A stretch of DNA of 60,868 nucleotides, counting the filler, from Schmidtea polychroa (lineage: Eukaryota), in NCBI GenBank assembly GCA_044892525.1. It is 3 parts of 3 records of this genome, joined end to end, with 100 filler letters (N's around TTAATTAATTAA, not from the genome) between each part and the next. Parts side by side here need not be neighbours in the genome. Positions count along the whole stretch, not along the records: positions 24,251 to 40,574 come from CM097888.1; 2 more parts are not named here. One strand, written 5' to 3'. A program made the translations under genes and the position numbers. Below the pieces are notes generated by a model. It made no database searches, was not told where the DNA came from, and saw nothing but the letters and a program-made list of their open reading frames with translations. Positions within the stretch are counted from its first letter, which is position 1; the number at the start of each line of letters is the position of its first letter. Shown here piece by piece: positions 26,848 to 37,803 of this stretch.

Positions 26848-27503
26848 TTATTTAGGATTCTGAATAAGTTTTTTAAACAAAGGTAAAATTAGATTTTGGA
26901 AAAATGTTTTCAAATAATATTTTGATCTTTTTGAATTTAATATAAAATTTAAATATCTCTCGAAATTTCGTCTGATTCCATAACATTTCACGTTGAGTTT
27001 TCCAATGCTCGTAATTTTTAGTTTTTTCAAAAACTTTTTTTGTTTACAGGTAATTTTTATTATCACATCAATGTCGATTGTTGGGATATTTATTTTAACG
27101 AATTTTTTCCTTATACTAATACATTTTGGCAGCTTTGCTTTGGCTTTCAAATTCAGATCCGTAATTCTTAAGCGGCCACTCATTGTCAAGGTGTTTTTTA
27201 TTTTGTTTATTTTAGTCTGAAATTTTCCTATTTGTTTGAATTCTTTCAAATTTTTCACAACAACTTTTGTCAATCGGATACCGGCGAATTTCATCTTTGA
27301 AATCGACTTTCCAGTTAAACTCAAGGCAACCTTTCGCACCTTATAATCGATGGTGTTGTTCAAGAGATAGATGTGTCCTGAATTGATAATACACGCTATT
27401 TGATAAAACAACTTCAATTACTTTTAAAATGGCATCCATTGTCGGCGTTGATAGAAATCAGAAAATAGAAAATAGTAAAAAATATATAAATTTTTATTTT
27501 CAT
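26848..27503 (-). CDS. Secreted Lys-rich Der p 7/Grp7-allergen-like (TULIP fold) protein, paralogue 1; exons 27503-27422 and 27377-26848; 203 aa
   Basis: Signal peptide MKIKIYIFFTIFYFLISINA. A 44-bp phase-1 GT-AG intron (27421-27378) joins it in frame to the 189-aa ORF. Colinear similarity to the paralogues at 31659 and 37181. Family assignment is by eye. Confidence 0.8.
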
Positions 27504-27540
27504 ATTTTTAATGTTCTTTGATAGGAATTATTTTTTCGTT

Positions 27541-28000
27541 TTATAACAACTGTTTACGCCTGCATGAAGCGCTGATTTATGGGTCTCATACACTACCAGC
27601 AACCTGGTGTCAAATATACCATTAAAATTATTTTTTTACTCAAAATGTATTTTCTTTTAGAATATATTATTAAAATAAAGAAGATCGCTTATTGATATAC
27701 TTTCGTTTAACGCTAGATCTATCTTGGATAGTAAGTCATGTTAGTCTTTTTAATAATTCTTTCTTTATAATAATATCATAAAGTGGTTTACCTTTGTCTG
27801 GGTCGCTCTTTTAAATAGTTCGATGGACTAGTATTCATAATTGCACTAATAAAACATCTAAGTTTCTCTAAAATAATAATCCAAAAGGGATTTTAGTAAA
27901 ACAATTTATTCCTCTTTTATTCTAAAATCTATTGCTAAACATCTAAACATCCGTCTTTTCTTGTGTTATACTGGTTTAGGACATCAAGAACAAAGTTAGA
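27541..28000 (-). mobile_element. Possible decayed Bel/Pao pol fragment (integrase Zn-binding region)
   Basis: ETHKSALHAGVNSCY resembles the H..xLHAG integrase zinc-binding motif. The surrounding frames contain many stops. Confidence 0.35.
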
Positions 28001-29200
28001 ATTCATAAATATATTCTATAATAATTTTGTTGGTGTTTTTACTTAAACCTTTTATTGTCGTTTAATCCTTCTTTGTTTGAATTTTCTTTGTGACTTCGAG
28101 ATCTCATTTATGATTGTTACCTTTAAACATCATATCCATTTGTTGTGTTTACTTAAACAATTTAGGGCTTTGTAAACATTCTTAATAAGTGATAAGGAAA
28201 TCATAAGGTAGGTACCTTTTCTTGTACGCATTTAATTGATTTAATTCAGTAACTTTGACTTCATTCTTTTCTCTTTTGCTATTCTTTGAAGAAATATATT
28301 CCGAATTTCATCTTCGACCTACTGGCATTTTCTTTTACAAGTGTCTCTCCTACAAACCTTTTAAAAATAAAATAATTAAATTAGTCGAAAATCGCTAAAA
28401 TCAAAACAATCAAGCAGTTGACCTCTTGTCTTTATGTCTTTATGTTCAGATAATTTGATTTTCAGAAAACTAATTCCATTATTGATTTTTGAGAAAAGAC
28501 TAATCGCATCATTTTTCTCATTTTTCGCTCGGAGTTTCCACATTGCAATTAAATTATTTTTAATTAATTTGAATTTATTGAATATCTTTTACTGGGGAAA
28601 CTCACTGATTTTTATATTATTGTATTTGTATTTTTCTCCTAATTTTCCATCCACACATTCCTGTTTCTCCGAAATATGTCATTTTTTAATTTTGAAATTT
28701 TTATCAATTTGCACACAATTAAATTTCCTTTTCCCCACTCGAGACAAATGCCAAAAATTTCATTTTCTGATTACGATTTGGGGGCGTTGTAGGAAAGGTT
28801 TTGGGATCCAAGGGCACTAAAAAAATTTGATAATCATTGATATATCCAAAAAGTACACATATTCTTTCGAAAACTGATTCCGTATTGTACTAATTTTTTA
28901 TCTCTTTATTTTAGAGTTATTAAACGTGACTTTCTGCGTGACTTTCTAAATTAAAAAATATGAATTATTAAATGAAGCACTTAATTTTTTAATATAAAGT
29001 TTGCAAAGTTTCAAAACCTCAAGAATTTAAAAAAATTAGAAAAATCTTCGCGTTCCACAATTTGGGAAATACTGTGTTAAGCATTTTATGTCACAAAAAA
29101 TATTCGATTTTAGCTAGTAAAATTCGAACAAAATCCATCGCGTTTACGTTTATGGCGGGTCTGGTGCGTACGGATATGTAAACCGCATTAACACGTTTAA

Positions 29201-35127: not shown

Positions 35128-36445
35128 TAGGGTTCGGAATCCCGGGATCCCGCAATTTTTAGCAATCCCGAAATCCCGGGATCGAGCACTTGATCCCGGG
35201 ATTTGACTTTTTAAGCCTAAAAGGAAAAATACCTTACAGTTTCCTTAAAAATTCTTTAAAACAATCGTTTTTGGTTGAACATTTTCAAATTTAAATTTTT
35301 TCGGTTGAGATTTGAATTTTGTCATATAGAAAATACTTGGAATTTTTTTTGCATTCAAATTCTTAAAATATATAAATTTTAAAAATCGAAATTCTTGGAA
35401 CTTTTTTTTTCAATATTCAATTTGTAATTATATTCTTAAAATTTTTTGTTGGCGCTCAGACGTAATTAGTATATAATTGTTTTCACGTGTTATTGTTTTT
35501 GATTATTTTAAAGTGTAGATTTAATTAAACTATCATTCGCACTATTTGAACAACAAATTTTAAAAATATAATGGCTTCTTACATAGACCATGAAAAGAAA
35601 AGTAATTCTGCTGTTTGGAAACATTTTTTAAGAGAAGAAAAAGGACAGACAGCGATGTGTAAGTATACCGACAGCAAAAAAATTCTAAAAATTGGGGGTG
35701 GGTCAACGAAAGGTCTCCATACGCATCTACTTTTCTCTTGAACAACCTTTAACTATTGCAGACGAGCTCAATAAAGCTATAAAACAAGCACATTTTCCGA
35801 GGATGCCAATTCGATGTGAGATGCTGTCAGCGAAAATTCAAAAGGAAATGGTATTGTTTGAAAATGGAGGAACACGTGGTGATTTTTTGCAAAGAGCGTA
35901 TGATTTTCTAATGACAATCAAACCAACCAGTGTAGAGTCCGAACATGCCTTTTCTGCGGCCGGACTATTTGCAACGAAAATAAGAAGTCGTATGGGCGAT
36001 GAAACTTTGGATGCACTATGCTTTCTTAAAAGTTATTTTAAAAATAACAAAGAATAATTAGGTATTTTTTTATAATTATTTAATAATTAAAAATGTAACT
36101 TTAACAATGAACTCTTCATAATTTATTAATTAAGAATATTATAAACATAATGAATTTGATGTATAATATTATAAAAACATTTATTTTCTTTATAATTTAA
36201 TAAACTATTTTTTATAAACTTATTTTTGAATGTGTCATTTTTTTTAAATACCTGTTCTTGAAATATATTAACGGGATTTTTAAATACCTGTTCTTGAAAT
36301 ATATTAACATATTATTTAAAAAAAATTAATCTCTTTCTTTTTCTATTAATTTGGTTAAAATAGTATGTTAATATATTTCAAGAACATGTATTTAAAAATC
36401 CCGAAATCCCGGGATTGAAAATATAGCACGGGATTGCCAACCCTA
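35128..36445 (+). mobile_element. Internally deleted hAT DNA transposon (1318 bp)
   Basis: Perfect 8-bp TSD GGCATAAA (35120-27 and 36446-53). TIRs TAGGGTTCGGAATCCCG and TAGGGTTGGCAATCCCG. A BED-finger remnant from ATG 35571 (SAVWKHF...AMCKYTDSKKILKIGGGSTKGLHTHL) is joined to the hAT dimerisation domain (PTSVESEHAFSAAG...RSRMGDETLDALCFLKSYF). Confidence 0.93.
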
Positions 36446-37180
36446 GGCATAAACATTAACATACACATGTAATGACTCCCTAACTATCCAATATATAACT
36501 TGCTTATAAGACCTATAATTTAACAAATGTTATACAACGTCTTGGACACGTCGCATCGACATTGTGTACAGATAGTAATCGACGTACATAGCATGTCATT
36601 CCTACACAAGTGATTATATGAATTTGGTTAAATTAATTAAACTCTATTATTATACACAGAATTGATATTATTAAATTATAGTTTTAACAAATTTAGAAGT
36701 AGAGTTTTTTATTTATTTTTGCTGTTGAACTATCTTCAATTTCTACTCCGAGTGTTGAAAAAGGCAGGCCCCAAATCTTGCGTTAAATATAAAACAAAAA
36801 TTGATATATTGTCTGAAATGAAATGAAGAAAAATTGAAATCTTTACTAGAAATCCAATTATTCGTGAATTCACAACGAAATGCATAAAAGTTATTTTCAA
36901 TAATTTTAAGACATTTATTAACGTGAAACACTTTTGAAGTCATAAGGTTCCTCTACCGACTCCGAAAGCCTAATTTGAAGAGTAAGAAAATGCTACAATT
37001 TTAATAAATCTCAAAAAATAGAGATTTAAGAGCATTTAGGGATGAAATTTTACAGATTTCATAATATATGTTCTTTATTGGATTACTAAAACTTATCAAT
37101 TTGTACAATTTAAATTATAAAATAAAGTAATGCAATTTATAACAATAAAATAAATGAAAACTTTGTAATTCATGTGATGT

Positions 37181-37803
37181 TTATTTTATATGTGTAATAG
37201 TGTTTAGATGATCCTGAAATGCTTTCTTTGCTTTCTCTTTATTGCAGTAATAAATAATCAAAGCAGATATGACTTCCTTTAGCTTTTTGTTTTCGCAATT
37301 GAATTCTACTTTGTTAACATGTAAAGATACAATTTTGACAAGTTTATATCTTATATTATTATTAAAGTCCATCGTGACAATGATTTGGACATGAAATTTG
37401 TCAGCAAAGACTTTCACTTCTTCCACATCCCAGTTCAATGAGTAAATCTTTACATTAGTTTTGAAAAACAATTTGTTTGTTTTAAAATTCATACGAACTG
37501 TAGCTTTTGGATAAATTTTATCATGTATCACTTTGATCTTGCCAAATACCTCTAACGAATTCGCTTTGAAAATTTTATTCATTTTAAATATCAAAATTTC
37601 AACCGCATCATTTGGGATTAAATGATTTTCCAGCAAATTTACGAAGGATTTTTTGATTTTTTTAGTATAAATTTCCTTTACTCGACTTTCTGAAATAATA
37701 ATTGTTTTAATTATTACCAATAAGTAAAAATATAACCGGTAGAATTTTCAAAGTTTTCAGCAATGGCTATACATAAAAGATAAAAAAATATCAGAAATTT
37801 CAT
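37181..37803 (-). CDS. Secreted Lys-rich protein, most diverged paralogue 3 of the TULIP-like cluster; exons 37803-37737 and 37689-37181; 191 aa
   Basis: Signal peptide MKFLIFFYLLCIAIA and a 47-bp phase-1 intron (37736-37690) in the same position as in paralogues 1 and 2. Similar length and alternating hydrophobic beta-strand pattern. Confidence 0.75.

Follow-up and report, generated by a model that had tools for sequence, protein, structure and literature searches.

We analysed a stretch of 60,868 nucleotides of the Schmidtea polychroa genome (assembly GCA_044892525.1), called the window in the following, which consists of three parts of three records joined end to end with 100 filler letters between each part and the next. 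The piece at positions 24251-40574, which comes from CM097888.1 and has a G+C content of ∼27%, carries on its minus strand three co-oriented two-exon genes, here named genes 1, 2 and 3. We consider it quite likely that they form an old tandem array coding for three small, secreted, basic proteins, in which genes 1 and 2 encode single-domain TULIP proteins of the group 7 type known from the mite allergen Der p 7, and gene 3 is most likely a diverged paralogue.

Gene models and layout of the locus

The gene models were rebuilt mechanically from the sequence by reading upstream of each long frame and splicing the result (Table 1). The architecture given in the original prediction, namely three co-oriented genes with a signal-peptide exon, a phase-1 intron of 44-47 nt and one long exon coding for proteins of 191-203 aa, was reproduced exactly. 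All three introns are of the GT..AG type, interrupt the frame in phase 1 and end in TTCAG. None of the intron lengths is a multiple of three, so that retention of any of them would break the reading frame. From ATG to ATG the distance is 4805 nt between genes 1 and 2 and 5495 nt between genes 2 and 3. The long exons correspond to the second to fourth longest open reading frames (ORFs) of the piece, measuring 197, 189 and 188 aa from stop to stop. When the piece was simulated with a first-order Markov model, just two ORFs of at least 150 aa appeared across 300 runs and the maximum was 178 aa; the frames of the three genes are far beyond chance at 27% G+C. It had also been stated that the genes are not recoverable from the ORF track alone. 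This is true of the short signal-peptide exons, which are absent there, but the long exons are present in a plain ORF list.

Further paralogues or pseudogene fragments were found in the piece neither by tblastn nor by profile searches of six-frame fragments. The units of the three genes share no repeat at the DNA level, and the two units that were compared with DNA sequencing runs show single-copy depth. A recent segmental duplication or a transposon-borne origin was rejected on these grounds, and the three genes are therefore old duplicates and not transposon copies.

Exon 1 of each gene encodes Met-Lys, a hydrophobic core and then small residues before an acidic residue. The three N-termini carry a basic residue at positions 2-4 and, inside the first 20 residues, a core with a Kyte-Doolittle hydrophobicity of 2.3-3.0 (2.65 in gene 1). 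All three were found to be signal-peptide-like by hydrophobicity and by the residues at positions -3 and -1, in line with the signal-peptide exons that had been proposed, and the genes would thus encode secreted proteins. The mature proteins are small (∼21 kDa), lysine-rich and basic, with isoelectric points (pI) of 9.5-10.6; that of gene 1 has ∼183 aa, a pI of 10.6 and a net charge of +39. Since the genome is AT-rich (27% G+C), the lysine richness is partly an effect of composition.

Two sequence features of the proteins were recorded in addition. Genes 1 and 2 and two database relatives introduced below (P0001 and P0002) have in common a cysteine that precedes the exon 1/exon 2 junction by 3-4 residues; it is absent in gene 3 and in the database relative of gene 3 (P0004). 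The motif hydrophobic-Gly-Lys-hydrophobic-x-hydrophobic-Lys occurs twice in each of the proteins of genes 1 and 2, at about mature residues 45-55 and 120-130, and gene 3 has similar motifs that align at both places. This doubling may reflect the two-sheet pseudo-repeat of the TULIP fold.

Table 1. Exons and introns of the three genes (positions in the window; minus strand throughout)
Feature	Position	Strand	Length	Details
Gene 1, exon 1	27422-27503	(-)	82 nt	ATG at 27503-27501; predicted signal peptide, 7 further residues and base 1 of a split codon
Gene 1, intron	27378-27421	(-)	44 nt	Phase 1; GTAATT..TTCAG
Gene 1, exon 2	26848-27377	(-)	530 nt	Includes TAA stop; whole protein 203 aa
Gene 2, exon 1	32233-32308	(-)	76 nt	Predicted signal peptide and 7 further residues
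Gene 2, intron	32186-32232	(-)	47 nt	Phase 1; GTATTG..TTCAG
Gene 2, exon 2	31659-32185	(-)	527 nt	Includes TAG stop; Grp7_allergen domain; whole protein 200 aa
Gene 3, exon 1	37737-37803	(-)	67 nt	Predicted signal peptide and 7 further residues
Gene 3, intron	37690-37736	(-)	47 nt	Phase 1; unusual GTTATA donor, TTTCAG acceptor
Gene 3, exon 2	37181-37689	(-)	509 nt	Includes TAA stop; whole protein 191 aa

Relatives in sequence databases

The UniParc entry P0001 is 42% identical to the protein of gene 1. At the position of the intron it reads Cys-His-Phe-Glu-Lys-Arg where gene 1 has Cys-His-Phe-Lys / Arg, i.e. the two parts are joined and intron-derived residues are missing. When 1.84 billion cluster representatives were searched exhaustively with a profile, two true relatives were obtained at E ≤ 0.001, P0001 and P0002; P0003, which was matched in the same search, was rejected as spurious because it is a repeat protein. 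With only two true relatives among so many representatives, the subfamily is lineage-restricted and fast diverging, as the original prediction had proposed. A word-indexed homologue search with gene 2 returned nothing, and the same type of search with the gene 3 sequence as well as with a gene 3 profile returned P0004 only. Gene 3 and P0004 share 71% identity, both have 191 aa, and the signal peptide and the exon junction are the same. By these comparisons gene 3 is a real, conserved gene, and genes 1 and 3 are conserved in another species.

P0002 (231 aa) is annotated at positions 135-830 of the metagenome contig Ga0307474_10370383 (L001; 1,111 bp). The family member on this contig has its ATG at position 177, an exon 1 of 73 nt and, at the homologous place, a phase-1 intron of 45 nt (250-294, GTAAAT..TTTTAG). 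The deposited gene call begins upstream of the real ATG and translates the intron as 15 residues, whereas the spliced protein would have 202 aa. This read-through is explained by the intron length, which is a multiple of three, by the lack of a stop within the intron and by a prokaryote-style gene caller; it illustrates that genes of eukaryotes in metagenomes reach the protein databases in distorted form. Together with the gene on this contig, four genes from at least two organisms share one architecture.

Upstream of the start codons of genes 1 and 2 we observed the 12-mer AAAATAATTCCT on the minus strand, at 27523-27534 (20 nt before the ATG of gene 1) and at 32342-32353 (34 nt before the ATG of gene 2). 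These are its only two exact copies in the whole window, both in the same orientation. A similar sequence, AAAATAATT, is located ∼30 nt before the ATG on the metagenome contig. The 12-mer may be a shared promoter (core-promoter) element or an element of the 5′ untranslated region, with statistics that are weak in such AT-rich DNA.

Assignment of genes 1 and 2 to the TULIP proteins of the Der p 7/Grp7 type

The proteins of genes 1 and 2 are 28% identical over 165 aa (BLASTP, E = 3e-17), and the colinear alignment of these two paralogues that had been claimed was recovered in this comparison. Gene 2 matches the Pfam family Grp7_allergen (PF16984) above the gathering threshold (26.4 versus 21 bits, E = 8.6e-6), so that this check of the original prediction came out positive for gene 2; residues 29-170 align to profile positions 42-174 of 180, which is nearly the whole profile. 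In an ESM feature search, gene 1 scored 0.96 with 185 features shared with a 'Lep d 7-like' cluster of PF16984. The membership of gene 1 in Grp7 follows from its homology to gene 2 together with this ESM match, and gene 1 presumably adopts the TULIP fold.

The AlphaFold2 model of gene 2 shows an N-terminal helix, long strands and C-terminal helices in this order. Der f 7 has been described as an N-terminal helix, a curved antiparallel sheet and a long C-terminal helix (PMC3435378), and the order predicted for the secondary-structure elements of genes 2 and 3, namely a helix, strands and then C-terminal helices, agrees with this description. When the gene 2 model was searched with Foldseek, the best 4 of 350,542 PDB chains were Der f 7/Der p 7 (E = 4e-3 to 2e-2), and the next ranks were taken by BPIFA1, Mdm12, SMP and JHBP. 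VIA-align 2 works without Foldseek; here the best 11 of 48,161 chains were all TULIPs, with Z scores of 5.3-3.1 obtained from a poor model. CETP (5.3), Der p 7 (5.0), BPI (4.8), Der f 7 (4.8) and JHBP (4.7) were leading, and Takeout, the beta-carotene-binding protein, SPLUNC1 and latherin were also among these 11. The AFDB cluster matches of the model with telling names comprise 'Circadian clock-controlled protein', which we take to be a name of the Takeout family, an SMP-LTD protein and 'Lipopolysaccharide-binding protein'.

However, several observations do not favor this assignment. Gene 1 yields no match to PF16984 at E ≤ 10, and genes 1 and 3 as well as P0001, P0002 and P0004 stay below every Pfam TULIP family. 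A PDB sequence search with the profile of genes 1 and 2 gave nothing at E ≤ 10. The gene 2 model itself is of low confidence, with a predicted local distance difference test score (pLDDT) of 42. The JHBP/Takeout profile (PF06585) matched none of the six proteins, namely those of genes 1-3, P0001, P0002 and P0004. The profile checks thus failed for genes 1 and 3 with PF16984 and for all proteins with JHBP. The poor AlphaFold2 models of genes 2 and 3 are due to alignments that contained two sequences only. Although the scores are individually weak, we regard the assignment of genes 1 and 2 to the Der p 7/Grp7-type TULIP proteins as secure, because a single superfamily was enriched exclusively and the Pfam match agrees with it.

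Gene 3 and the state of the array

The description of the locus as a cluster of three Der p 7/TULIP-like genes holds for genes 1 and 2 by Pfam, ESM and fold ranks, whereas the kinship of gene 3 is not demonstrable. Gene 3 might instead belong to an unrelated small secreted family that adjoins two Der p 7-like genes, with a layout common among secreted genes and no shared descent. A number of results point in this direction. Gene 3 shows no BLASTP similarity to genes 1 and 2, and hhalign against the profile of genes 1 and 2 gave a probability of 0.05. Pfam searches with gene 3 and with P0004 were negative, as was the reverse profile test from the side of gene 3, and a PDB sequence search with the gene 3 profile found nothing meaningful. 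The AlphaFold2 model of gene 3 has a low confidence (pLDDT 44) and its fold searches were led by beta-barrels and NTF2-like folds, with TULIPs scattered and not separated from other folds; the combination of AlphaFold and Foldseek against Der p 7 therefore ranked Der f 7/Der p 7 first for gene 2 but gave mixed folds for gene 3. The ESM score of gene 3 (0.91, 134 shared features) lies inside the range that is reached by chance matches.

On the other hand, a profile built from gene 1, gene 2, P0001 and P0002 aligns with gene 3 in a colinear and almost gapless manner over 152 positions (5.5 bits, E = 8e-4 for a single comparison, HMMER, one-way), and none of 1000 shuffles reached the profile scores of gene 3 and P0004, albeit by a small margin. 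The ESM neighbours of gene 3 and of its orthologue P0004 that have a family, ten in number, all belong to the TULIP clan (Grp7, JHBP or BPI clusters). Gene 3 lies on the same strand as genes 1 and 2 and at a similar spacing, its intron agrees with theirs in phase and position, and its protein is of similar length. In Drosophila, TULIP paralogues drop to ∼10% identity. We therefore regard an unrelated family as fairly unlikely, and it is probable, yet unproven, that gene 3 is a much diverged paralogue from the same array, in which case it would have the TULIP fold. A further alternative is that the three frames are silent relics or genes in annotation only, i.e. duplicates that are no longer expressed. 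The genes are surrounded by transposon debris and the splice donor of gene 3 is unusual. A search for sequencing runs returned none recorded as RNA that contains this DNA. Four runs were compared with 31860-37850, a stretch without gene 1; contigs from those presumed to be RNA mapped exclusively to a repeat at 35060-36460 and left genes 2 and 3 uncovered, as would fit silent genes. However, at 14-76 million letters the RNA-labelled runs are too small to show the absence of transcripts. Three intact frames of 188-197 codons go far beyond chance, and splice sites and signal peptides have likewise been preserved. Genes 1 and 3 have database counterparts of another source that are 42% and 71% identical, have the same length and show no damage to the frame. 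We consider it very unlikely that the array is silent.

Proposed function

In the reading of the locus as an array of secreted TULIPs, the proteins of genes 1 and 2 would start with a helix, continue with a long antiparallel beta-sheet that is curved, and end in long helices. By analogy to Der p 7, Takeout/JHBP and the N-terminal domain of BPI, the signal peptide would be cleaved and the protein released outside the cell, where a hydrophobic ligand such as a lipid, lipopeptide, isoprenoid or similar molecule could be sheltered in a cleft that the helices form with the sheet. Their strong positive charge, most marked in gene 1, would favor contact with anionic lipids or surfaces. Most likely the proteins are secreted carriers or sensors of a hydrophobic ligand, as suggested by their known relatives. 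Two points weaken this proposal: Der p 7 binds its sole reported ligand only weakly (PMC3435378), and the signal peptides were judged by a heuristic, i.e. hydrophobicity and the -3/-1 rule, and not by SignalP. The original prediction had called the proteins secreted lipid-binding effectors; an effector role found no support in our analysis.

The charge of the proteins allows for other roles. The TULIP-like shape could have been kept while the extreme positive charge serves a membrane-active antimicrobial, an adhesive or a matrix role in place of lipid carriage. The pI values and the net charge of the gene 1 protein would fit such a role, as would the fast divergence and the lineage restriction of the family, and the N-terminal domain of BPI is established to be cationic and membrane-active. 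However, the lysine richness has a share that comes from composition alone, and the known relatives of the group 7/TULIP kind act through their hydrophobic pocket (PMC3435378), so we consider this explanation unlikely. Similarly improbable in our view is that the genes belong to a subfamily of secreted TULIPs which is confined to one lineage, evolves fast, is extremely cationic and was recruited for interaction with other organisms; such proteins may be, for example, immune factors that target lipopolysaccharide or membranes, or part of a secretion that reaches a host or substrate. If this were true, gene 3 would show to what extent the fold can diverge after sequence has ceased to reveal it.

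Comparison with known TULIP proteins

The closest known counterparts of the carriers proposed here are Der p 7 and Der f 7 (PF16984; PDB 3H4Z, 3UV1 and 9HAE). They are secreted proteins with a single domain of ∼190-200 aa, as is also predicted for the proteins of the array, and the order of elements predicted here is the same as theirs; gene 2 lies above the Pfam threshold of this family and its model finds them as best structural matches. In contrast, structural alignments show just 9-13% identity, genes 1 and 3 as well as the database relatives remain below Pfam detection, and the proteins of the three genes are far more basic. The second group of counterparts are the Takeout/JHBP proteins of arthropods (B-TDPs). 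Drosophila has 30 secreted TULIP genes of the Takeout type in seven clusters, with ∼30% identity within and ∼10% between clusters. The B-TDP clusters of Drosophila are co-oriented and contain 2-5 genes at intergenic distances of up to 5.5 kb. For arthropods, secreted TULIP genes in tandem clusters with identities of ∼30% or less are the normal case, and the group 7 allergens are members of the arthropod family that also includes the Takeout-type TULIPs. The array described here is similar in that genes for predicted secreted single-TULIP proteins lie in a co-oriented cluster with comparable spacing and identity, and the gene 2 model has JHBP, Takeout and the beta-carotene-binding protein among its best structural counterparts. 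It differs in that PF06585 is not matched and that by sequence it is closest to Grp7 and not to Takeout. Finally, the N-terminal domain of BPI/LBP/CETP and the short PLUNC/latherin proteins (PF01273) have the superfamily fold proposed here and are cationic and extracellular, and CETP, BPI, SPLUNC1 and latherin appear within the top 11 structural matches of gene 2. These are vertebrate families, however, with no match to our proteins at the sequence level, and BPI, LBP and CETP have two TULIP domains versus a single predicted one in the proteins of genes 1-3.

The nearest protein clusters in the ESM searches were overwhelmingly from arthropods. The locus had been put forward as a candidate for an undescribed system; this could not be upheld, as clustered secreted TULIPs are typical of arthropods and public databases already hold proteins that match genes 1 and 3. 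The three genes are new, very diverged examples of an already known kind of protein, and since the pattern is that expected for arthropod-type secreted lipid carriers, it opens no new question by itself. The main value of the analysis is one of annotation: three genes are defined with exact splice sites, and two of them gain an assignment to a fold and a family that ordinary searches miss. The near absence of these proteins from public protein sets shows how fast extracellular TULIPs leave sequence space.

Surrounding sequence

The piece contains no tRNA genes and no Rfam families. At its left edge, a plus-strand frame at 24252-24443 enters from outside and matches the last 34 positions of the Pfam family Med23 (E = 2.7e-5; 22.6 bits at a cutoff of 25); it is probably the last exon, which encodes the C-terminus, of a gene for Mediator subunit 23 that extends beyond the piece on this side. 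On the plus strand, positions 25699-26340 hold the longest ORF of the piece (213 aa, 219 from stop to stop), for which Pfam gave no match. The block around it has a G+C content of 0.34-0.37 compared with ∼0.27, and the ORF may encode a transposon-derived protein. At the right end, a 114-codon open frame extends over 40232-40573 on the minus strand, with no convincing Pfam match. Two direct repeats of 42 nt with 81% identity, 60 nt apart, are found at 39230-39331 and are followed shortly by a run of N from about 39575 on.

Between genes 2 and 3, the sequence at 35060-36460 is a high-copy repeat: in a DNA run its contig depth is ∼3,300-7,800 versus ∼50-90 in the flanks, i.e. ∼100 times as high. 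Inside this repeat, at 35692-36057, we found a fragment of a hAT C-terminal dimerisation domain (PF05699, E = 3.3e-5). The deepest bin of the repeat also contains a near-perfect hairpin at 36272-36403, with arms of 59 nt that are 92% complementary and 14 nt apart, which looks like a miniature inverted-repeat transposable element or the remnant of a terminal inverted repeat.

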